A stretch of 64,000 nt of DNA, taken from positions 62,001 through 126,000 of IMG/VR virus record IMGVR_UViG_3300047320_000285; one strand, 5' to 3'. Position 1 is the stretch's first letter; each line of letters starts with the position of its first letter. Positions 7,053-61,906 of this stretch are shown here, in pieces. The notes under the pieces were generated by a model. It saw only the letters and a list, made by a program, of their open reading frames with translations, did not search any database and was not told where the DNA came from. Both the position numbers and the translations under genes were made by a program.

Positions 7053-8930
7053 ATGAAGAAGAATATCATCGCAGTGGCAATTTTGGCTTCACTTGCTGTA
7101 TCGTCGGCATACGCAAATTGCGGTAATGGTGGTAGCAACGGGAATGGTTGCGGGGGCGAACAAGGACCGGCAGGCCCGCAAGGTCCCGCCGGTCCTCAGG
7201 GTCCGCAAGGTGTTGCGGGTCAGAACGGCAAGGACGGCGCGTCGGTTACTGGTGTCAGCATCAATGGCACTTCAGTCACGACAACGCTCTCCAATGGTTC
7301 GTCGGTGCAAGGTACGGTCACGGGGGTGGCTACGACTGCACAGCTGAACAGCACGAATAGCAACGTCGCGACGAACACGTCGAACATCACGACGCTGCAA
7401 GGTCAGGTTAGCCAGCAAGGCGGTGCAATCGCCGGTCTGCAGGTTAGTAGCGCCACGCACCAAGAAGTCGCTGACACGGCAGCCGGCACGCTGGCTGCCG
7501 CCAACGCCCACACGGATGCATCAGTGGGTGCAGAAGCGGCGCGCGCGAAGGGCGCCGAAGCAGGTCTGCAGTCGCAGATCAACGGCGTGAGCGGTACCGC
7601 CAACCAAGCGCTGGCGAATTCGAAGGACGCGCAGGCAACTGCGGGTCAAGCGAAGTCGATCGCGCAAGGCGCCGCGGCCACGGCTAACCAAGCCGAAGGC
7701 ATTGCAGTCGGTGCTGCTATCACAGCGACGGGTGCAGCGATCGTTGCCGGTCATGCAGAAGGCGTTGCTGAAAGTGCGGCCGCACAAGCCAAGTCGGCTA
7801 CGGCTACGGCGAACCATGCTGACTCAGTCGCCGGTCAAGCACTCGCAGCGGCGAAGGATGCCGACACGGATGCCGATGCGGCAGGCAAGGCAGCCGCACA
7901 CGCCCAAGGCACGGCAGACACAGCGCTGGCTTCGTCGGCACAAAACGCCAAGGACATCAAGTCCGAAGCGCAAGCCCGTGCAGCAGGCGATGCCGCCACG
8001 CTGAAGTCGGCCAATAGCTACACGGATTCGGCCGTGGCGAACGGGGTGTCGCAAGCAGAATCATACGCTGATGCTGGCGATGCCAAGACGCTGAATTCTG
8101 CGAACAAGCATGCGGACCAAGCCGCTGCGGCGGCCTACGTCGGTGCAGTCGCGACCTCGGCAGCTTACACGGATGCGACGGCGTCGAAGACGTTGAAGTC
8201 GGCGAATTCGTACACCGACAAAGCAGTTGGTGCCGAGTCTAGCCGCGCCCAATCGGCCGAAGGTCAACTGCAGTCCAACATCAATTCGGAATCGACTCGC
8301 GCGCAGACGGCTGAAGCTGGTCTGAACACGAAGATCGACAACGAAACGACGCGGGCGACGACAGCCGAAGCCGGGCTGCAAACCCAGATCAACGGGAACA
8401 GCCAGTCGATCACGCAAATCCAGTCGAACATGAACAAGGGCCAGATGGGTTCGGGCGCGCAAGTGCAATCGAACAACTCGGTGGCACTCGGTGCAGGTTC
8501 GGTGGCTGATCGTGACAACACGGTGTCGGTGGGTGCAGCAGGTGCCGAGCGTCAAGTGACGAACGTGGCAGCAGGTACGGCCGACACCGATGCGGTGAAC
8601 GTCGCGCAAGCTCGCTCGTACGCCCAGACGTCGTACCAGCAATCGACTGCTTACACGGATCAACGTGTGAACGCGCTGCAGAACTCGTTCGACAGCTTCA
8701 AGAAGGACACCTACGGTGGTCTGGCTTCGGTGCTGGCAATCGCGGGTCTGCCGCAACCGATCCAGAACGGCAAGTCGATGATCTCGGCGGCTGTCTCGAA
8801 CTACCACGGCGAGCAAGGTATTGCTGTCGGTATCTCAACCGTCCAAGGCAACTTCGTGATCAAGGCCGGTGTCTCCACGTCCACGCGCGGTGATGTCGGC
8901 GCAGTCGCTTCGGCAGGCTACCAGTTCTAA
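7053..8930 (+). CDS. YadA-family trimeric autotransporter adhesin with collagen-like segment
   Basis: Signal peptide [21 protein letters not shown]; (GXY)n; ANSYTD stalk repeats; [24 protein letters not shown] head-neck; beta-anchor ending GYQF. Confidence 0.9.
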
Positions 8931-23194: not shown

Positions 23195-23530
23195 ATGAAT
23201 GCCAAGAAGATCAAGTACACCAATCTGGATGTGCTACTGTCCAAACTGGAGACCAATCTCGAGCGGCTGCGCTTCGTGAAAGAAGCAGCCGAGCAAACGG
23301 AAGTCGAAGCCTTTATGGAAATCGACTTCGGGTTGCTGAATCTGGCCAACGAAACGCTCACGATGGTGACCGCCATGAGCATGTATCACCTGCACAATTC
23401 GGATGGTGCACAGACGTACGCGGCCACCGGTGAAGCACTAGGGGTTGGCTACGAGCGCATCCGCCAAATCGCGATGGAAGGCCGTGACAAGGTTACCATC
23501 CACAAAACCCGTCGTAACCGAGGAGAGTAA
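23195..23530 (+). CDS. protein with C-terminal sigma-70 region 4-like HTH
   Basis: RBS AAGGAG; QTYAATGEALGVGYERIRQI resembles the T.EE.G..LGV.RERIRQI consensus. Confidence 0.65.
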   Translation: MNAKKIKYTNLDVLLSKLETNLERLRFVKEAAEQTEVEAFMEIDFGLLNLANETLTMVTAMSMYHLHNSDGAQTYAATGEALGVGYERIRQIAMEGRDKVTIHKTRRNRGE

Positions 23531-23531
23531 C

Positions 23532-24344
23532 GTGCAAAACGAAGCAATCTTTGCGGCTGCCCAAGCAGCTGAGCTGACCCGTGTCAAGACGTGCTGCGAA
23601 GGCGTCGAGAACAAACTCTGTTCCACCGATGAATGGAAAGGCAATCTCGGGCCATTCGCGGCACAGATCGAGCGACGGACGATGGAACGTGCCATTGCGT
23701 TTGTCGAACGCGGCAGCTTCCTGCATGACGACGCCCCGGCCGCTCGCATGGCGCGTGAATGCGCTAAGGAAATGCGTAAGCAACTTCTGTCGTCCGATTA
23801 CGTGTTTGTCACCCCGACGACCTTGCAAAGTGCGGCTAAGGATCTGCTGAGTCCGATTGGTAGTTCGCTGAGTAGTCCGAGCAATCCGGCGCGCATGACC
23901 GAGGAGTATCGTCCCGACTTTGTGGCAACTCCGACACTCCCGCTCGAAGCACCGGTCGTCGCTAAACCAGAGGTGGCGATCGCGTGGTCAACGGCCATCA
24001 TGCTTTTCCGCACCCATCTCACGCAGAAGTTCCTCCGCGCCGGTATGCATGTGCTGGACATCGAAAAGATGCTCAAGGAAGCCGAAAAGACCTACTCGGC
24101 TGAGGCGGACGAGAAGCTGCAACAGCTGCTGGCAGAAGCGAACGTGTTGGCCGGGCGGTGGCCGCCGGATATTAAAGAACGACCCGACCATCCGATGGAT
24201 CCGATTCTCGGTGAGGAAAAACCTGCTGCGTTGCACGTGCACACCACAGATACGTCGGGTGACTTCACGTACGAGGCTAAAATCGCTGTTGTTGCCGAGA
24301 AGAAAAGCAAGATTGGTGAAGATGGTGTCCTGAAGAACGATTAA
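23532..24344 (+). CDS. hypothetical protein
   Basis: RBS AGGAGAG before GTG 23532. Confidence 0.7.
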   Translation: MQNEAIFAAAQAAELTRVKTCCEGVENKLCSTDEWKGNLGPFAAQIERRTMERAIAFVERGSFLHDDAPAARMARECAKEMRKQLLSSDYVFVTPTTLQSAAKDLLSPIGSSLSSPSNPARMTEEYRPDFVATPTLPLEAPVVAKPEVAIAWSTAIMLFRTHLTQKFLRAGMHVLDIEKMLKEAEKTYSAEADEKLQQLLAEANVLAGRWPPDIKERPDHPMDPILGEEKPAALHVHTTDTSGDFTYEAKIAVVAEKKSKIGEDGVLKND

Positions 24345-24405: not shown

Positions 24406-25980
24406 TTAAATGCCCGGCCCGTACAGGTTCACGGTGAAGCTCACCGCGTAGCTAAGCGGCGCTGACAGGGTGATGGTTACCACGCTGCCATTGGTGGTGA
24501 GGGTGGCTGTCACAGCACCCAGATTCTGCGCACAACGGAACACCGGTACCCAGTTACCCCGACTGCACGCTTCAAAATCCAAGGCGGTATAAGAGACACT
24601 GGTTTTGCCGGCAGCAATCGTCAGGGTCGGGGGATTATAAGTTTGCGGGATGATCCGCGCTTTCGTCGTCCCGGACAAGAAGGTCGTCCCGACGGGATTG
24701 AGGTTATGAATTCGGCACGCTGAGATACCGCGCGAGTTACTGTTCTGGACTTGGATAACTCCGGTTTTAAACGGTGCCAGCGTACCCGCCCCCGCGGCGT
24801 CGACAACGTCGTTCAGATCCAGTCCTTCGATATAGCCCGCTTTGATGGCAAAGTCTTGGGCTTCGCCTGCAATCACAGTGGCGTTACTCTGTAGCGCGTC
24901 CCAGCCGCTGGCGACCAGCTTAAGTTGATAGACGCTGGAGTCAGTCGGCACCAGGTTGATAAACGCATTGCCCAGTCGCTCACAGGCAACCCGATTCCAG
25001 ACCGAGCCTACCGTCAAGCCGGCAGTCGTGGTGCTGGCCAAGCGAGGGTCGAAGGTGTTAGACTGATACGCAAAATACGGGGTGTAGCCACAGAAATAGT
25101 CATCGAGATCGGCATGCACGCCCATTGAGCCGTTCTTGGGCAGGTAAAACGCTGCGCGCTGTTCAGCGTTGCTCGAACAGTTGGTCCACTTCCAGTCACC
25201 ACCGGTGCTGAGAATACACCACGTCGCATAGTTGCCACTGCTGCCCAGATTGTCCAGCGAGCTGTGACCGTTGTTACACCACGCGGTATAAGGAAAGCGC
25301 ACACCCGACACGAAGATGTCTTTGGCATCAAACTTGTGATTGCCCCCATTGCCAAAGATAATCCCGTCCATCTGGCAGCCGACGTTACCGGGCGCCGCAC
25401 CGGCTTGTCCGGGTCCGGTAATCTGGAAGCCCCGGTATTTGGCTGTGTTCAGTGGCGCGTGAGCGGAATAGACTGACAACGCAGCGGCGCCCGCACCCAG
25501 ATCGGACTTCCATTTAAGCGTCACACCATCGGCACCACCCCCAGCGCGAAAGGATTCACAGATCAGATGATGATCGACCAAGCTCAGCTCGGTGCCCGTA
25601 CAGTCATAGTTGCCCCGCACCAATTTGACGTTAGGGGTCAGAGGGGAGTCAAAGGCGGCCTGCATAGCGGCACCGGTCAGCGAGCTACCGGTGTAGTCGG
25701 CACCGTACCATACACCACAGTGGTAGTCATTGTAAATGGAGCCGGCGATGGCACCGCCTTGGGAAAGGTCAAAGATCTGCTGAAAGTCGCTGGCATCGAT
25801 GTAGGCATTGGCAAAGGTGATGGTCACGCCAGCCGCGGGCTGCAGCATGGCCCCGGGATCAAAACTGAGATAGCCACTCAGGGTAAGGTTAGTGGATACA
25901 GGGGTGAGGCCTGAGAGTTTGGTGAGGGTACTGGGAATACTCACGCTGGTAACTCCTTGTAAAGCGGATTCAACCATCAT
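24406..25980 (-). CDS. tailspike / beta-helix depolymerase-like protein
   Basis: WYGADYTG....AAMQAAFD motif that typically opens pectin-lyase-fold spikes; Gly/Asn/Ser-rich. Confidence 0.65.
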   Translation of the reverse strand: MMVESALQGVTSVSIPSTLTKLSGLTPVSTNLTLSGYLSFDPGAMLQPAAGVTITFANAYIDASDFQQIFDLSQGGAIAGSIYNDYHCGVWYGADYTGSSLTGAAMQAAFDSPLTPNVKLVRGNYDCTGTELSLVDHHLICESFRAGGGADGVTLKWKSDLGAGAAALSVYSAHAPLNTAKYRGFQITGPGQAGAAPGNVGCQMDGIIFGNGGNHKFDAKDIFVSGVRFPYTAWCNNGHSSLDNLGSSGNYATWCILSTGGDWKWTNCSSNAEQRAAFYLPKNGSMGVHADLDDYFCGYTPYFAYQSNTFDPRLASTTTAGLTVGSVWNRVACERLGNAFINLVPTDSSVYQLKLVASGWDALQSNATVIAGEAQDFAIKAGYIEGLDLNDVVDAAGAGTLAPFKTGVIQVQNSNSRGISACRIHNLNPVGTTFLSGTTKARIIPQTYNPPTLTIAAGKTSVSYTALDFEACSRGNWVPVFRCAQNLGAVTATLTTNGSVVTITLSAPLSYAVSFTVNLYGPGI

Positions 25981-26018: not shown

Positions 26019-26774
26019 TTACTGGATCGCAGTTACCGTCCACGCATCGTCGACCAGACCGTTGTCGAAGACGAATTCGTACGGCAGATAGAAGTAACCA
26101 GCGTCACCCCAATCTGCACCCCACGAATTGCGCACGATCACGAGCTTACGGATACGATCGTAGCCGACAGCGAGAACCGCATGCCCTCCCATGCATTCCT
26201 CGGTGTCAACGTTCGGCATCGGTACCATCCCGTTAGCCGCCACTTCGTCCGACTCGAACGACGCGTAGACCGTGATCCCCATGACGATCGGAAAGCCTGC
26301 AGCCAGTGCATGCTCAAAGCTGGCCTGATCCACAGCCACGCGCTTGTAGGCGAGCGCGCGATGCTGCAGACCGTCGTTGAATGCTTCCATCGTCGGCACG
26401 TCTTTGAACTTCGCTTCATTGTACGGCCAAAGCGATTCTTGGCAGATCCCGTACTTCGCGATCAGCTTGATACCGTCACGGATCTGGGCTCCGCCGTCTT
26501 GGTCGACGTCACCTTCGTAGTTACGTTCGTTGAAATACACGAACAGCTCCGAGAGCTTGATGAAGGTTTCGCGCTGCTTGTTCTCATCGAACTCGACCGC
26601 GGCGACAATGGCAAAGCCCGTGCAACAGCCGAGCTGGTCTTGGTTCTGGATCGCGGAGCAACCCGGGCGCCAGTCCATCACGTCCGGCGTGTCTTGGGGT
26701 GCGGCGGCGTTGTAAAGGTGGTCACGGGCGTCGTGGCCATCACGCACGACGGCGTATTTGCGTTGTTGATTCAT
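26019..26774 (-). CDS. papain-like (C1A) cysteine peptidase
   Basis: DWR..., QDQLGCCTGFA (catalytic Cys), GGHAVLAVGYD (His), RNSWG..WGD.GYF (Asn). Confidence 0.92.
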   Translation of the reverse strand: MNQQRKYAVVRDGHDARDHLYNAAAPQDTPDVMDWRPGCSAIQNQDQLGCCTGFAIVAAVEFDENKQRETFIKLSELFVYFNERNYEGDVDQDGGAQIRDGIKLIAKYGICQESLWPYNEAKFKDVPTMEAFNDGLQHRALAYKRVAVDQASFEHALAAGFPIVMGITVYASFESDEVAANGMVPMPNVDTEECMGGHAVLAVGYDRIRKLVIVRNSWGADWGDAGYFYLPYEFVFDNGLVDDAWTVTAIQ

Positions 26775-27658: not shown

Positions 27659-28015
27659 TTACGCTTTCATTGCCATGGGGATCGGGGCACCCGCGTTGTT
27701 CAGGGACACCGTGAACTTGAAACCCGCGGCTTTCGCTTCATCGAGCAGATGCTGCACGCGTTGCACGAGTTCGAGTTCGTCCCTGATGACGCGTTCAGCC
27801 TGACGTTGTTGCTTCTGCGCTTCTTCGGTAAAGCTGATACCGTCGAAGAGCTTATGGGCAAACTGAATCGCAGCCGAGCGGGGTGCAGCTTGAATGATCG
27901 GACCCAGTGCGGTACCGGTCGTATCGAGCAGACCGACCGCTTGGGCGATTTCGACTACACCCGGATCATTCAAGCGATTGCCCTGCGGGGTGACGTTCAG
28001 AATCGGTTCGGACAT
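27659..28015 (-). CDS. hypothetical protein (probable late gene)
   Basis: GGAG RBS and TATG 33 nt upstream; hairpin + TATGCC on the - strand downstream (27624-27651). Confidence 0.7.
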   Translation of the reverse strand: MSEPILNVTPQGNRLNDPGVVEIAQAVGLLDTTGTALGPIIQAAPRSAAIQFAHKLFDGISFTEEAQKQQRQAERVIRDELELVQRVQHLLDEAKAAGFKFTVSLNNAGAPIPMAMKA

Positions 28016-28057
28016 TATAAGACTCCAGTAAGTAGTTGGGGTTACCGCATAGCATTT

Positions 28058-28233
28058 GAGGGTATTGGGCTGGGTTGTGTTTAAGCGCGGCACTCGCGGG
28101 GAGTGGCCCACTGAGCCGGTTTACAGGTTTGGCCGGTCTTCCAAATCGGTGGAAAAGACCCGTTGGTAGGGATGGAGCCTTGTTCACTCCTGCCTGAATC
28201 CAACCCTTGGGCACAGTCCAGCGCAATACCCTT
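28058..28233 (+). ncRNA. putative structured RNA (multibranch, closed by a 28-bp stem), unknown class
   Basis: 28058-28085 pairs with 28206-28233 with one G-G mismatch and several G-U pairs; three or four internal hairpins. Confidence 0.6.
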
Positions 28234-28253: not shown

Positions 28254-28559
28254 ATGAATCAAACTATCATGGTATCGAATCTGATTATTCTGTCTAACTC
28301 GTTCAGTAGTGCGGGTGGTGATGGCGCGCTGTTCCCGCATGCATGGGCGCTGCTCATTTGGTTCACGATCAGCGCAGTGGCTTTCGTGCTAGGTATGTTT
28401 CCGTGGATGGAGTGGAGCGATCAGCTCTATGCGCATCCGACTGCGAACTGGATGCACGAACACAACGCGCTGTATCGGCGCAAGCTGACTCTCTTGTTCG
28501 GCACAGTGTTGTTGATCTCCATTGTCAGTGCGGTTGTTCCACTTTACTTGGGGTTGTAA
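28254..28559 (+). CDS. small membrane protein
   Basis: Two hydrophobic segments. Confidence 0.65.
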   Translation: MNQTIMVSNLIILSNSFSSAGGDGALFPHAWALLIWFTISAVAFVLGMFPWMEWSDQLYAHPTANWMHEHNALYRRKLTLLFGTVLLISIVSAVVPLYLGL

Positions 28560-29282
28560 ATGAACGGCCGGGTTAAACGCATCGAACAAAACGTCCAAGG
28601 CCGTGACTTCGCCATTGGTGACATCCATGGGCATTTCAGCCGGGTTAAGCAAGTCTTGCAGTCCGTAGGATTCGATCCTGCGGTAGATCGATTGTTCTCA
28701 GTGGGCGATCTGGTGGATCGGGGGCCGGAGTCCGAGCAGTGCTTGGCGTGGCTCGACTACCCGTGGTTTCACGCCATCAAAGGCAACCATGAGGAACTGC
28801 TGGAAGCCTACACCTATGCCCAGATTAAGGGCGGCTACTACATGGAATGCGGGGGTGCGTGGCTGATCGGTAAGACCGAGGTCGAACGCATGGAATACGC
28901 GGTACGCTTCGCTGAGCTACCCTACCTGATGGAAGTCGAGACGACCCACGGTCCGGTCGGGCTAATTCACTCGAACGTGTTGCGCGATTCGTGGGAGTAC
29001 ACCAAGCAGCGCTTTCTCGGCTGTCAGGATCCCAAGGACTGGCAGACTATTCGCCAGATCTGTCTGTGGGAGCGGGAGCGCATCCTGCAGGAAGACCGTA
29101 CCGTGGTGGAAGATATCCGTGCCGTGGTGGTGGGTCACACCCCGTTGCCGCTCGCCACTGTACTGGGCAATGTGTATCACATCGACACCGGGGGCTGGCA
29201 CCGTGGCCATTTCACCTTACTCGATCTGACGACGTTGCAAACCGTACCACCGATGAAACCCAAGCTGGACTGGAGTAACTAG
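28560..29282 (+). CDS. Ser/Thr protein phosphatase (PphA/lambda NinI-like metallophosphoesterase)
   Basis: GDIHG, GDLVDRG, GNHE, H, VGHT and IDTG motifs all intact. Confidence 0.92.
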   Translation: MNGRVKRIEQNVQGRDFAIGDIHGHFSRVKQVLQSVGFDPAVDRLFSVGDLVDRGPESEQCLAWLDYPWFHAIKGNHEELLEAYTYAQIKGGYYMECGGAWLIGKTEVERMEYAVRFAELPYLMEVETTHGPVGLIHSNVLRDSWEYTKQRFLGCQDPKDWQTIRQICLWERERILQEDRTVVEDIRAVVVGHTPLPLATVLGNVYHIDTGGWHRGHFTLLDLTTLQTVPPMKPKLDWSN

Positions 29283-29291
29283 GAGAACAAG

Positions 29292-30035
29292 ATGAAACAA
29301 CGCTTTGCGCACTACGAGCGCAACAAGCATGGCCGTGATTTGGTGGTGGGCGACATTCAGGGTTACTTCGCTCGCCTGAAAGAAGAACTCAAGCGTATCC
29401 AGTTCAATCCGGAGAAGGATCGTCTGTTCTCCACTGGTGACATCGTCAACCGCGGCCCCGAATCGCACTGGTGTATCGAGTGGATGAACTACCCGTGGTT
29501 CCATCCGGTCACCGGTAACCACGAGCTGCGCGCGATCAACTACGGCTTTGGCTGGTGGAAAGACACGCAGGACTTTAACGAATGTGGCGGTCAGTGGATG
29601 ATCGACATGGCACCAGACGCGCGCAAGAAGTATGCGGAGCATCTGGATCAACTGCCGATCGCATTGGAAGTCGAGATGCCCAACGGCGACCTCAAAGGCG
29701 TGGTGCATTCGGAAGTGTACGCCAACGACTGGACCCGCATGCGCGAAGAGCTGGAAAGCCCCAAGCACGACAAGGAAATCTCCGCCGTGCGCAATCTGGC
29801 GATGTGGTCGAGGAAGAAGTTCGAGGGCGAGAACCCCGAGCACGTGGAGAACATCCACACGGTGTTCGTCGGCCACACCACGGTGCTGCGCCCGCGCATG
29901 CTGGGTAACGTGATGTATTGCGATACCGCAGGCTGGACCGAGAACGGCTACTTCGCGCTGATCGATATGGCGACGCTGGAATCCGATCCCCCGCCGACGA
30001 CGGCTTCGCACTGGGCGCGAGGTGCGCATGCTTAG
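29292..30035 (+). CDS. second PphA-like metallophosphoesterase with altered active-site motifs
   Basis: GDIQG, GDIVNRG, GNHE, VGHT, CDTAG. Confidence 0.85.
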   Translation: MKQRFAHYERNKHGRDLVVGDIQGYFARLKEELKRIQFNPEKDRLFSTGDIVNRGPESHWCIEWMNYPWFHPVTGNHELRAINYGFGWWKDTQDFNECGGQWMIDMAPDARKKYAEHLDQLPIALEVEMPNGDLKGVVHSEVYANDWTRMREELESPKHDKEISAVRNLAMWSRKKFEGENPEHVENIHTVFVGHTTVLRPRMLGNVMYCDTAGWTENGYFALIDMATLESDPPPTTASHWARGAHA

Positions 30036-33235: not shown

Positions 33236-33775
33236 ATGGCAACGAAAGCAGGCCGGGTCGAACTCAAGGACATCAAGGCTGGCAAGACATTCTGGAAAGC
33301 AGTGATCGATCCGGTGACCGGTAAGCGCTCGGCGTCGGCCATCCAGATCATCGATGGCATCCAGCTCGGACGTTTCAAACGCCCAGACCAAACACCCGTC
33401 GCCATGTGGTGGTATGGGCAACGCAGCCTTGACCCGCAAACCGGTCAGACCCTCAAAGCGCGCGTCGTGTGTGATCCGATGTGGAGTCCGCGCAACGAAC
33501 AGGACGAACCGATCTTCGACAAGCTGTTTGTCAATCGGGCGGCGGTGATGCGTTGGATCAAGCGCTACGAAAGCAACCGCATCACCACGCTGTGCGAAGA
33601 CCGTCGGGTGTTCGACTGTGGGGATCGTCCGTTGCGTACAGTCGCACGCACTCAGCCCGATCAACTGGATCTGGAGCAGCTGCCCGATCACCGTTTCCAA
33701 CACGCTGAGATCGCCTTCGCCAAGCACTACGGCGTCCCACGCTCGGCGAAGCTCAACGAAACCCCGCACGGTTAA
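33236..33775 (+). CDS. hypothetical protein (paralog pair member 1)
   Basis: AAGGA RBS; MATKAGRVELKDIKAGK. Confidence 0.75.
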   Translation: MATKAGRVELKDIKAGKTFWKAVIDPVTGKRSASAIQIIDGIQLGRFKRPDQTPVAMWWYGQRSLDPQTGQTLKARVVCDPMWSPRNEQDEPIFDKLFVNRAAVMRWIKRYESNRITTLCEDRRVFDCGDRPLRTVARTQPDQLDLEQLPDHRFQHAEIAFAKHYGVPRSAKLNETPHG

Positions 33776-33784
33776 GGAGTTACG

Positions 33785-34636
33785 ATGCCAACCAAAGCAG
33801 GCCGTCTTCGCATTGAAGACATTCGGGTCGGCCGAGTGATCTACGACGTCGGCATTGACTGGTCGACCTTCTCGGCGTTTGCTCGTCCGCTGAAGATCGT
33901 CGCATGGGCCCCGCACAGCTACAACGCGGGTCGGGACATCATGTTCACCACGCTCGAACCGGAAGGTAACTACCACGGTTTCCATTCGCGTCGCAACATT
34001 ACGCAGTGTGGATTCTACGGTACGTTCGATCAGGGTCGACCCGATTCGGAAATCATCGAACGCGAATCCACACCGATCAACTTCTTCGTCAACAAGCGGG
34101 CCGCAGAACGCTATATGGACCGTATGCTGGCTGACGGGACGTGGCCGTGGGAAAGACCTGCCGCGTTCGAAGCGTACGGTTACAAGCCCGTTAAACCGCG
34201 CCCGACGCCGGAGAATATCGGACCGGCCGCGCAGCGGGAAGTCGAAGCGATCTGGGGTCGGATCAATACCGAGCTGGCTGGCTCGCCGCTGACCGGGTTT
34301 TCGAATAAGGAACTCGTCTCGGTGATCGATCGCTACATCACCAAGCTGCTCAAGACCGATGCCAAGGGTCCGGTGATCACCATCGAGAGCTGGAAGCAGG
34401 AACCGGATGGTTCAGTCTCGTTCACGGTGACAGGTCCGCCTGAAGTGGTCGCAAGTATGCGAGCAGCTCAGCAACAGGCGGCCAGCATTGGCGTGGCCAA
34501 GGACCTCGAAGGTGACACGATACGTGAATCGTTCTCGGCACTCGACTCGCTCAGACGCCAGTTAATCGGCACACGTCACGAGTACGGCATAGAGCCCTCG
34601 CCCGAAGGCGAGGGCTCGGTCAAAGCTGGCGAGTAA
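33785..34636 (+). CDS. hypothetical protein (paralog pair member 2)
   Basis: AAGGAG RBS; MPTKAGRLRIEDIRVGR. Confidence 0.75.
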   Translation: MPTKAGRLRIEDIRVGRVIYDVGIDWSTFSAFARPLKIVAWAPHSYNAGRDIMFTTLEPEGNYHGFHSRRNITQCGFYGTFDQGRPDSEIIERESTPINFFVNKRAAERYMDRMLADGTWPWERPAAFEAYGYKPVKPRPTPENIGPAAQREVEAIWGRINTELAGSPLTGFSNKELVSVIDRYITKLLKTDAKGPVITIESWKQEPDGSVSFTVTGPPEVVASMRAAQQQAASIGVAKDLEGDTIRESFSALDSLRRQLIGTRHEYGIEPSPEGEGSVKAGE

Positions 34637-41333: not shown

Positions 41334-42464
41334 ATGAGCGACGCAATTATCAAATACGAACGCACCGAGCAAGGTGTGCGCATTGTTCCCGTGTATCGGG
41401 AAGAAACGAAGGACTACTTCGTCGATCTGTCGAAGATCGCGCCATGGCTCGTTGAAGTCGATGGCGTCGAAGTACAGACCGCAGCCCTGAAGATCGGCAC
41501 GCTTTTCGATCTGCTTGGCATCAGCCAGACGCAGTCGTTGCTCGACACCGGCGTGCTCGACATGACCGATTCGCTCGACCCGAACATCGCGCTCGAATCG
41601 ATCTTCGTCGAAGCGAAGTATCCGGACGGCACGTCGAAAGTCCAGCGCTACGAACTCGTGCACGATACGGGTGATCAGCAGGTCGGCACGCAGTTCACGT
41701 TCTTGGCACAGAACCATCGCCAGCTGGAAGTGAGCTACCACACCAACACGCTGCTCTCGCCGTCGGCTAACTCAGCGATGGATCTGCATGTCGCCGGTAT
41801 CATCAACCTCCAGCTGGGTCACTGCGAACTGGTGGCCTCGGGCGTGCAAGCGGGTACGGAACCCGACGTCGAACACGAAGTGATCGGCTATACGCTCAAA
41901 GCTTTCCGCACGAACTACAACCGTCGGCCGGTTGAGATTCCGGCAGTCTGGCCGGAAGGCGAAGCAGTGTTGAAGCAGCCGGAAGCCGAGCAGGAAGCAG
42001 CACCGGAAACACCGGAAGTGATCAGCGCGTTCTCGGGTAAGGAATACATGCCGGGTTACTTCAACCAAGGCAAGCACATCACGTCCCACGAAGTCGAAGG
42101 TGCGGCCAGCAACCTGACGATCACGGTCGGCGATGAACCGGCCGTTCCCGGCAACGCCAACCACCGCTACGACATCACGGGTTTCGATACCGACTCGAAC
42201 GCATCGGAATACGAAGGTTCGTTTGCGCGTGCGTTGTCGATTCTGTTCCAGAACGGTCCGATCCCGTCGCATGGCAATAACGGTGTGACGCTCGAAGCGT
42301 TGCTCGCCGTGGCAGCACATCGTCTGGAAGGTTTCCAAGCGGGTCCGTTCGCTTCGCAGGACAACGAAGACGCCCTCAGTCACATCAAGATGGCGCTCGA
42401 AGCTTTGCAGCGCCGGACTCGCAATCGCATCGCCCGTGAGGTCGAGGGCACCTATCAAGCCTAA
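41334..42464 (+). CDS. fusion of phiKZ-type major-capsid-like domain and Tad1-like anti-defence sponge
   Basis: C-terminus GNANHRY..I.FQNGP....NGVT.E.LL.V..HRL..FQAGPFAS.DN..AL.HI..AL.....RT.NRI.R.VEGT matches the Tad1 pattern; N-terminus RIVPVYR..., DLLGISQT..LL..GV.D.TD.LDP.I.L, IGY.L.A.RTN.NRR recalls phiKZ gp120-family capsid. Confidence 0.75.
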   Translation: MSDAIIKYERTEQGVRIVPVYREETKDYFVDLSKIAPWLVEVDGVEVQTAALKIGTLFDLLGISQTQSLLDTGVLDMTDSLDPNIALESIFVEAKYPDGTSKVQRYELVHDTGDQQVGTQFTFLAQNHRQLEVSYHTNTLLSPSANSAMDLHVAGIINLQLGHCELVASGVQAGTEPDVEHEVIGYTLKAFRTNYNRRPVEIPAVWPEGEAVLKQPEAEQEAAPETPEVISAFSGKEYMPGYFNQGKHITSHEVEGAASNLTITVGDEPAVPGNANHRYDITGFDTDSNASEYEGSFARALSILFQNGPIPSHGNNGVTLEALLAVAAHRLEGFQAGPFASQDNEDALSHIKMALEALQRRTRNRIAREVEGTYQA

Positions 42465-59716: not shown

Positions 59717-60844
59717 TTAAGCGGTTTCGAAATCGAACTTGAAGTCGAAATCCTTGAACCTGAATTCCTTGAACAAGTTCTGCATGTCGTGATCAAAGAA
59801 GCCGTCGAGTTCGGCGTTGATCTCTTCCACCACGTCTTTCTCGCCCTTGTGGGCGGACTTGGTGCGACTGAGCGCTTCCTTGCGGAACGCGATGATCTCG
59901 CCCACCAGCCCCCATGTATCGGCTTCGAAGCGGGTCATGTAATTCACCGCCGACATGTAGAGCTTGATCATTTCCCAGTAACGGCGCAGCACTTCAGTCA
60001 ACTGCCCATCAGCACCTTCCACGCCCTTATTCGCCAGCGCACTGGCTCGCTTGGAAATCTCGCCGACGATATGATCACACTTCTCGAGCGTGAGCTTCCA
60101 GTTGCCGGAGATCGTGAAGATGTTCAGCGTTTTGAGCCAGCCGGTCACGCCGTTGATGGTACCGATTTGCTCATGGATGTTCTCCGGGAAGGACGGCTTG
60201 TCGCTGTCGACCTTATCCATCGCCTCTTTGGCCACGCTCATGGCCGCATTCATCGGCTCGACGCACTCGGCGAAGACCTTACGCATCTTCTCGGCTTCGG
60301 CCAGTTGAGCCTCTTGGTTGCCCGGGGTGTTGATCACGTTGACAAACGAGTTGACCACATCGACAATCGCTTGTCGGTGGCCGTTATTCGACAACAGCGC
60401 TGTGATCTTGACGATGGCATCCTTGTAGCCGGGATTGGTCAAGACGGTCTTTTTCTCCACCGAGAGCTTGTCCCAGAACTTCTCACCCAGTCCGTCAGCC
60501 TTGATCACCGAGTTGACCTTGTCTTCCACCGTCAGCGGCCGGCGCTCGGTGAACTTCTTGGCGAGCAGCTCATACTGGCGCCGCACCTCCTCGGTCATGG
60601 TGCGGTCTTTGCTGGTGCGACCGGTGATATGGTTGATAAAGCCTTTGATAGCCGCCGCAATCGCAGCCGCAATCTTGGCAATCACTTCCCAGACTTTCTG
60701 ACCGGCTTTCTTGAGGGTCTCGCCAAACGCTTCGGTCGAGATCGCTTGGACGTCTTCGCCCATACCGATCGGCACGCCAATGAACATACCCTCGACGATC
60801 TCGACCTGTTCGCCTTCTAGAGCGACTTTCAACATACGGTTCAT
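59717..60844 (-). CDS. phiKZ-like internal head protein paralog
   Basis: MNRMLKVALEGEQVEIVEGMFIGVP...ISTEAFGE. Confidence 0.75.
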   Translation of the reverse strand: MNRMLKVALEGEQVEIVEGMFIGVPIGMGEDVQAISTEAFGETLKKAGQKVWEVIAKIAAAIAAAIKGFINHITGRTSKDRTMTEEVRRQYELLAKKFTERRPLTVEDKVNSVIKADGLGEKFWDKLSVEKKTVLTNPGYKDAIVKITALLSNNGHRQAIVDVVNSFVNVINTPGNQEAQLAEAEKMRKVFAECVEPMNAAMSVAKEAMDKVDSDKPSFPENIHEQIGTINGVTGWLKTLNIFTISGNWKLTLEKCDHIVGEISKRASALANKGVEGADGQLTEVLRRYWEMIKLYMSAVNYMTRFEADTWGLVGEIIAFRKEALSRTKSAHKGEKDVVEEINAELDGFFDHDMQNLFKEFRFKDFDFKFDFETA

Positions 60845-60847
60845 GGC

Positions 60848-61906
60848 TTAGCCTTTCAGTTTGATTTTCTTCAGTTCCTCGAGCTGAGCGCCCAGCTCGT
60901 CCTTCAGACCGGGGTACGTTTGGACCGTCATCTCGAGTGCGCGAATCCGTGTGCTGATAATCTTGTTCAGCGCGTTGATCGCCGTCCATTCGAGATCGAA
61001 CAGCTTGTTCAGCCCACTGATAATCTGTTTGACTGCGCGCCAATAAACGTTAAACGCCTGCGCCGACTGCTTCGCGGCTTCCGTGGCCGCCTCGGTGCGC
61101 TGACCAAAAAGTTCAGTCTGGAACTGCTCGAGACTCTTTTCCAGCTCGGGCAAGATGTCGTCTTCGTACTTGTTGAGTACGCCCGTGCGTAAGTTGCTAT
61201 GCAGCAGCTCATTCGAGGTCCGCAAGCTGGCGACGATCTCGTCGATCTTGATGGGGACTTCCAGTTCCTTCGCATCGATCTTCGCCGCGTGCTGCGTACC
61301 TGCGGTGCGAAGCGTCGCGATCTTGTCCAGCAGCTTTTGCACTTCACTATCGGGCTTGTGCGTAGGCTTCTGACCTTCGTTAAGCGCGTATTTGAAGTCG
61401 TCCTTCAACATACGCACCCCGTCGCGCAACAGCGTACGGGCGGTGGCGGACTCCGCGACCTTCTCGAGTTCCAGCAAGGCCTTGAAGTTATCCGAACCGC
61501 TCACCAGATCGTATTCGTCTTGATCGAACTGGGTACGGGTCGTGCCGTGGTTGTCGGCGTTCCAGACCGATTCGATCTTTTCTTCCGAGGTGGTGCGGCG
61601 CAGCTCGGTGACCGCTTTGAGCGCCAGGCCATACTCGCGTCGCACTTCATCGCTCAGCGTGCGGTTGCGACCGCCGCCGTGGCGGAACCACTTGATGAAG
61701 CCCTTGACCGCCGCGATGGCACCGGCAATCAGTTTCGCCAGCATCTCCCATGCTGCCTTACCGGCCGATTTGACGGCGTCACCGAATGATTCCGTCGACA
61801 GGGCCCGCACGTCCTCAGCTGCGCCAACCGGCACGGCCACAAACATACCCTCGATGACTTCAATGGTTTCGCCCTCGAGGGCGAGGCGCAGTGCGCGATT
61901 GTTCAT
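60848..61906 (-). CDS. phiKZ-like internal head protein paralog
   Basis: MNNRALRLALEGETIEVIEGMFVAVP...LSTESFGD. Confidence 0.75.
   Translation of the reverse strand: MNNRALRLALEGETIEVIEGMFVAVPVGAAEDVRALSTESFGDAVKSAGKAAWEMLAKLIAGAIAAVKGFIKWFRHGGGRNRTLSDEVRREYGLALKAVTELRRTTSEEKIESVWNADNHGTTRTQFDQDEYDLVSGSDNFKALLELEKVAESATARTLLRDGVRMLKDDFKYALNEGQKPTHKPDSEVQKLLDKIATLRTAGTQHAAKIDAKELEVPIKIDEIVASLRTSNELLHSNLRTGVLNKYEDDILPELEKSLEQFQTELFGQRTEAATEAAKQSAQAFNVYWRAVKQIISGLNKLFDLEWTAINALNKIISTRIRALEMTVQTYPGLKDELGAQLEELKKIKLKG

Follow-up and report, generated by a model that had tools for sequence, protein, structure and literature searches.

The window, that is, the whole 64,000-nucleotide stretch of DNA analysed here, is part of IMG/VR contig IMGVR_UViG_3300047320_000285 (253,740 bp), a jumbo phage. 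Around the 176-nt element at 28058-28233 (+), a gene on the - strand and a + strand operon diverge. The - strand gene starts at 28015, has a GGAG Shine-Dalgarno and gives no Pfam or PHROG hit, while the first + strand ORF starts with an ATG at 28254, 20 nt after the end of the element, and is followed by two Metallophos/NinI-like phosphatases. The segments of the predicted fold and the adjacent genes, which are context and not part of the predicted RNA, are as follows.

27659-28015 (-): divergent upstream gene, 118 aa, no family
28058-28085 (+): P1, 5' arm of the closing stem, 28 nt
28086-28090 (+): J1/2 junction, CGCGG
28091-28105 (+): P2 hairpin, CACTC, loop GCGGG, GAGTG
28108-28152 (+): P3 arm, outer helix 28108-28113/28147-28152, inner helix 28116-28121/28131-28136, conserved loop containing ACAGGTTT, 10-nt 3' internal loop
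28153-28161 (+): J3/4 junction, A-rich and then CCC
28162-28204 (+): P4 arm, P4a GTTGG/CCAAC, internal loop TA/GAAT, P4b GGG/CCT, P4c GGAG/CTCC with a 9-nt loop
28205 (+): J4/1, a single C
28206-28233 (+): P1, 3' arm of the closing stem
28254-30035 (+): downstream operon, a 101-aa predicted membrane protein plus two NinI-like Ser/Thr phosphatases

The two phosphatases (28560-29282 and 29292-30035, +) are tandem paralogues, and the pair is conserved in all window-like relatives fetched. A papain-family cysteine peptidase (26019-26774, -; Peptidase_C1, E 4e-20) lies next to a 524-aa protein (24406-25980, -), whose N-terminus resembles a Xanthomonas phage tail-spike. The large proteins of the window phage have no tblastn match in 50,697 phage records and most have no PHROG family. 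Weak PHROG hits to a major head protein, internal head proteins and an RNA polymerase beta-subunit fragment (41334-42464, +; 59717-61906, -; 23445-24344, +), together with a faint PhiKZ_MCP hit in one relative (L090, introduced below), hint that this phage is distantly phiKZ-like.

The earlier note, made from the sequence alone, described a multibranched element closed by a near-perfect 28-bp stem, and this observation was confirmed. The arms give 27 pairs and one G-G mismatch, and six of the pairs are G-U wobbles. The + strand folds at -82.7 kcal/mol against a mean of -64.9 for dinucleotide shuffles (z = -4.20; 0 of 200 shuffles as good), whereas the reverse complement reaches only -70.1 kcal/mol (z = -3.46). 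The gene context is also as the note described it.

Homologues and covariation of the predicted fold

A blastn search of the region against phage genomes gave one striking hit. The interior of the element (28085-28206) is 84% identical to an unannotated intergenic stretch of Burkholderia jumbo phage FLC9 (321,833 bp; LC667451.1, around 169,100-169,270 on the minus strand of the record), while the arms and all flanking DNA do not match; in FLC9 the interior is closed by a stem of entirely different sequence. A covariance model built from these two copies was used to filter pattern scans with the invariant blocks, which gave four more copies on IMG/VR contigs of 172-315 kb (L020, L059, L061 and L068). 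Contigs encoding homologues of neighbouring proteins added three FLC9-like copies found through a neighbouring protein (L075, L080 and L085) and three copies in relatives of the window phage found through the phosphatase (L087, L089 and L090). In total 12 distinct sequences are known, the 11 homologues all lying on jumbo-phage or phage-like contigs (FLC9, IMG/VR and Logan/ENA/JGI contigs).

Other searches gave no further copies. Strict two-anchor patterns found nothing in metagenome or genome collections, and an 18-mer of the P3 loop found only chance or coding hits. Among the latter, a 22-nt identity to the P3 hairpin (L036:2489-2530, L040:1074-1113 and L049:6479-6516, from soil metagenomes and a Dormibacterota MAG) lies inside what looks like one protein-coding gene family (reverse-strand reading ..PAKPVNRP..), and we judge it coincidental, as no other part of the RNA matches. 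blastn of the element against plasmids and of its core against E. coli genomes gave no match, so there is no obvious plasmid copy or E. coli host-RNA mimic. There is no second copy in the window. Searches of the phage collection with neighbouring proteins found only FLC9 itself, and a search for related loci with window proteins found only the window's own contig, plus one weak unrelated hit.

On the model alignment of the 12 sequences, 99.1% of 453 pair-cells are standard pairs and 23 of 39 pairs have changes on both sides, with at least one compensatory pair in every helix. No shuffle out of 500 reaches these values, and sliding the 3' partners by 1-3 columns drops pairing to 31-50%, with 3-9 double-change pairs. 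The sample is small, 12 sequences in about 6-7 distinct lineages, and part of the alignment was fitted to the model. The analysis was therefore repeated with plain MAFFT plus RNAalifold, which recovered the same four helices with 17 compensatory pairs. Compensatory change at homologous loci was a test that the earlier note had set for its reading.

The junction and loop nucleotides of the four-way junction are nearly invariant. J1/2 is (C/U)GCGG in all 12 sequences and unpaired in both the model-based and the de novo consensus. P2 has 5 bp, its second pair occurring as A-U, G-C and G-U (four sequences each), and its RCGGG loop is invariant. In P3, the outer 6-bp helix has three pairs with compensatory change, the inner CCGG/CCGG becomes GGGC/GCCC in L089, and the loop contains a conserved ACAGGUU. 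J3/4 is AAAAG(A/G)CCC-like in all 12, and a single unpaired C separates P4a from P1 in every sequence. P4a is conserved, with a compensatory U-A to C-G change in L089, and is followed by a conserved UA/(R)AAU internal loop, whereas P4b and P4c are variable, P4c having at least three stem sequences. L089 lacks P4b-c altogether but keeps UA...AAU as a hairpin loop, while L090 retains only a short P4b hairpin capped with GCAA and also keeps these loop nucleotides.

Of the three internal hairpins named in the earlier note, all can be drawn in this sequence, but only CACTC/GAGTG (P2) and GTTGG..GGAG/CTCC..CCAAC (P4) are conserved and covary. The third, GGTCTT..CCA/TGG..AAGACC, is broken by A-G and A-A oppositions in most homologues and is rejected; the helices supported there are CCACTG/CGGTGG and CCGG/CCGG of P3. 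A pseudoknot of H-type between the P3 loop and the 3' internal loop is compatible with the six sequences first aligned, but its duplex energies are no better than those of shuffles, so it remains only tentative. A contact between the GGG of the P2 loop and the CCC of J3/4 is possible. A kissing interaction between the P3 and P4c loops is rejected, because the P4c loop is not conserved. Superficial resemblances to the SAM-I leader, to type I-F CRISPR repeats and to anti-Shine-Dalgarno sequence appeared in single members but are not conserved across the family.

P1 is 20-31 bp long with 0-1 mismatches in all 12 members, although it has several unrelated sequences, and all ten of its innermost pairs show compensatory changes. 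In the window (28068/28223), L087 and L090 a single 1x1 mismatch sits at the same position with different bases (G-G, A-C and U-C, respectively), and it is absent from the FLC9-like stems. P1 carries 2-7 G-U pairs in every member, and the + strand folds 3-20 kcal/mol better than its reverse complement in all 12.

These data bear on two further readings. The long inverted-repeat arms, the presence/absence polymorphism among related phages and the sharing by otherwise unrelated phages could suggest an element acting as DNA, such as a cruciform, a protein-binding palindrome, a replication or packaging signal, or a MITE-like mobile element. This is very unlikely, as the arms are the variable part and the interior the conserved one, the opposite of a transposon; the arms change by compensatory substitutions and keep G-U pairs, which are C-A mismatches on the other strand; the internal helices also covary; the window has a single copy; and no flanking direct repeats or transposase were noticed. 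The least likely reading is that of a small protein, for example from the ATG/GTG-initiated frame of 17-23 codons running from P4 into the 3' arm. An ATG or GTG is present at the same place in the nine sequences examined that keep the long P4 arm, and one length difference in the P4c loop is 3 nt. However, that frame covers only the 3' third of the element, the P4c region is deleted or replaced in L089 and L090, and the 5' arm outside the frame covaries with the 3' arm. Every frame has a stop in some lineage, a 1-nt indel separates FLC9 from its relatives inside the conserved J3/4, and substitutions show no third-position bias. A protein search with the spurious 60-aa ORF over the L020 copy, intended to detect mis-called ORFs over other copies, found nothing in 5.8 billion sequences. 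The element is therefore non-coding and selected as a single strand of + polarity, most simply as RNA.

Gene neighbourhoods of the element

The RNA is the best-conserved DNA of its locus: it is 86% identical between FLC9 and L020, where the flanking genes are about 66% identical or undetectable at the DNA level. The window phage shares almost nothing else with FLC9. The downstream genes also differ: a 101-aa membrane protein (predicted) in the window, L087 and L089, a phosphatase directly in L090, gp199 in FLC9, and a gp198 homologue in the other FLC9-like contigs, with no detectable homology or shared domain between these four. Moreover, gp199 lies downstream of the RNA in FLC9, but its homologue lies upstream of it in the relatives. 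The divergent upstream gene of the window is present in L087 but replaced by other genes in L089 and L090, while the peptidase is conserved near the locus in L088 (a relative of the window phage), L089 and L090.

Among relatives of the window phage, the RNA and the 101-aa gene occur independently of each other: together (window, L087, L089), RNA alone (L090), probably gene alone (the P0010 contig, which has only an 83-nt gap) and neither (L088). The same 15-bp terminator-like hairpin with a T-tract is conserved at L088:2430-2480 and L089:1973-2012. In L088 it is followed directly by the phosphatase Shine-Dalgarno and start, and in L089 by the RNA plus the 101-aa gene, which defines an indel cassette of about 560 nt.

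The inner P1 of L089 has the FLC9-clade sequence although its phage is window-like, which suggests exchange of the RNA between the two phage groups. A dCTP deaminase-like protein is 74% identical between the window phage (20226-21161, +) and an FLC9-like contig (L020:9117-9989), whereas most other proteins of the two phages have no detectable similarity, which suggests gene exchange between co-occurring jumbo phages. A multi-copy protein family with no Pfam or PHROG match shares a conserved 20-residue N-terminus (M-x-T-K-x-G-R-[IV]-x-L-x-D-[IL]-x-x-G-K-T-F-W) with divergent remainders (window 33236-33775 and 33785-34636, +; FLC9 gp205, L001:265-750; L020:6534-7094 and 7121-8314). It is present in both phage groups, within 2-5 kb of the RNA in each.

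In every case the element lies in the sense orientation, 16-30 nt upstream of a same-strand start codon. Simple consensus scans revealed no terminator-like site after it and no sigma-70-like promoter before it in the window, L087 or L089. The 45 nt between the start of the divergent gene and the P1 5' arm (28012-28057) are conserved among the window, L087 and L090 (..ACATAGCAWTT immediately before P1) and could be a phage-specific promoter. In L089 the element sits 22 nt after the strong terminator-like hairpin, so that its promoter there is unexplained. The element fills an intergenic gap in the sense orientation and is thus presumably transcribed with the downstream genes, although this is inferred from sequence alone.

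This arrangement also fits the main rival reading, a cis-acting leader (a riboswitch, a protein-binding operator or an antitermination-type element) controlling translation, stability or read-through of the genes immediately downstream. In the window-like clade the element always heads the phosphatase operon (four phages), in L089 it would form the 5' end of a transcription unit, and invariant junction nucleotides are typical of aptamers. On the other hand, across lineages it does not recur upstream of related genes, it changes sides relative to gp199, and no expression platform is visible, as the Shine-Dalgarno lies outside a fixed P1 and no terminator follows. A P1 of 20-31 bp is also far longer than the switching helices of known riboswitches. 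We consider a leader possible but rather doubtful, and a cis role cannot be excluded.

A candidate structured RNA family of jumbo phages

No match to any of the 4227 Rfam 15 models was found. The whole window gave no hits at gathering thresholds, and permissive E-value searches with the window, L059 and FLC9 copies gave only fragments of 4-15 bits against thresholds of 49-90. ARAGORN found no tRNA or tmRNA at default settings or at 80% thresholds, and at 60% only inconsistent calls on different strands and positions.

Orphan structured RNAs of phages and bacteria found by comparative genomics (e.g., the classes catalogued in Weinberg et al. 2017, PMC5737381; ROOL, GOLLD, raiA) are likewise recognised only by conservation plus covariation, with complex multi-helix folds, invariant unpaired nucleotides and no assigned function. 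The present element is phage-borne like them, but much smaller than ROOL or GOLLD, has an unusually long closing stem and is so far limited to two groups of soil jumbo phages. RNase III processing hairpins in phage polycistronic mRNAs (T7 R0.3-R18.5 sites, lambda N leader) share the intercistronic or leader position in the sense strand and a stem of about two helical turns, and the mismatch kept within P1 in the window-like clade is reminiscent of the internal loops that steer RNase III. Those sites are, however, simple hairpins, whereas here the stem closes a conserved core of about 110-125 nt (about 90 nt in L089) that would be unnecessary for cleavage alone. P1 has the roughly 20 bp or more of near-continuous double-stranded RNA expected of an RNase III substrate.

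In bacterial and phage Y RNA-like RNAs (YrlA), bound by Ro/Rsr, the 5' and 3' ends also form a long stem closing a branched, cloverleaf-like module, and some are phage-encoded. Here no T-arm or D-arm signature was detected, the stem has no conserved protein-binding sequence, and no rsr gene or TROVE/Ro hit was seen among the roughly 45 neighbouring proteins scanned, which do not cover the whole phage genomes. The phi29-type packaging RNA (pRNA, RF00044) is phage-encoded, about 120-174 nt, closed by a terminal helix and in parts more conserved in structure than in sequence. The present element has no RF00044 match, a four-way rather than a three-way junction and no conserved loop-loop complementarity, since the P4c loop varies freely, and the hosts and phage types are unrelated. 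A self-cleaving or otherwise catalytic RNA processing its own polycistronic transcript is improbable. The compact core with invariant unpaired nucleotides, the possible pseudoknot, the intercistronic position in the FLC9-like clade and the variable peripheral helices (P1, P4c), as in many ribozymes, would fit such a role, but there was no match, even weak, to any Rfam ribozyme model in three members, the pseudoknot energies are unconvincing and no conserved cleavage-site signature was identified.

The earlier note's inference of selection on an unclassified + strand RNA, possibly an RNase III substrate or a leader, is supported by the compensatory changes and the lack of an Rfam match, and the element is best described as a new orphan structured-RNA family of jumbo phages. 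Its suggestion of a protein sponge has no support, as there are no repeated loop motifs. Between its alternatives of a free small RNA and a structured leader, the gene context leans against a leader dedicated to the phosphatase operon but does not decide.

The explanation we favour, though only at about even confidence, is a self-contained non-coding RNA module belonging to a previously undescribed family carried by two otherwise very dissimilar groups of soil jumbo phages. Conservation, covariation, strand, architecture and independence from flanking genes rest directly on the comparisons above; transcription itself, co-transcription with neighbouring genes, processing at P1 and partner binding are inferred. 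A stem of this length is not needed merely to close a junction. We infer that P1 isolates the fold from the surrounding, translated message and is probably also the site where a double-strand-specific nuclease (RNase III type) releases or trims the core, although a long P1 could serve other purposes, such as binding of a double-strand-binding protein. We further infer that the invariant core acts by binding a specific partner, either a protein or a small ligand, rather than by regulating one particular downstream gene.

A more far-reaching view, which is possible but tentative, is that the element is the first representative of a new functional RNA class specific to jumbo phages, an aptamer or ribozyme-grade fold or the RNA subunit of a phage ribonucleoprotein. 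Its four-way-junction core would bind a phage or host factor, and it would be exchanged between unrelated jumbo phages as a self-contained RNA gene.

Jumbo phages are full of genes of unknown function, and almost nothing is known about their non-coding RNAs. The element described here is a compact, well-supported predicted RNA fold with riboswitch- or ribozyme-like conservation of unpaired nucleotides, kept by two phage groups that share almost no proteins, and gained and lost independently of its neighbours. One carrier, FLC9, is a cultured phage with a tractable host, Burkholderia glumae (PMC12388082, PMC11530567), which makes direct tests feasible. If the core binds a defined partner, the element would be either a new regulatory or anti-host device of giant phages, or a new RNA class for structural study.
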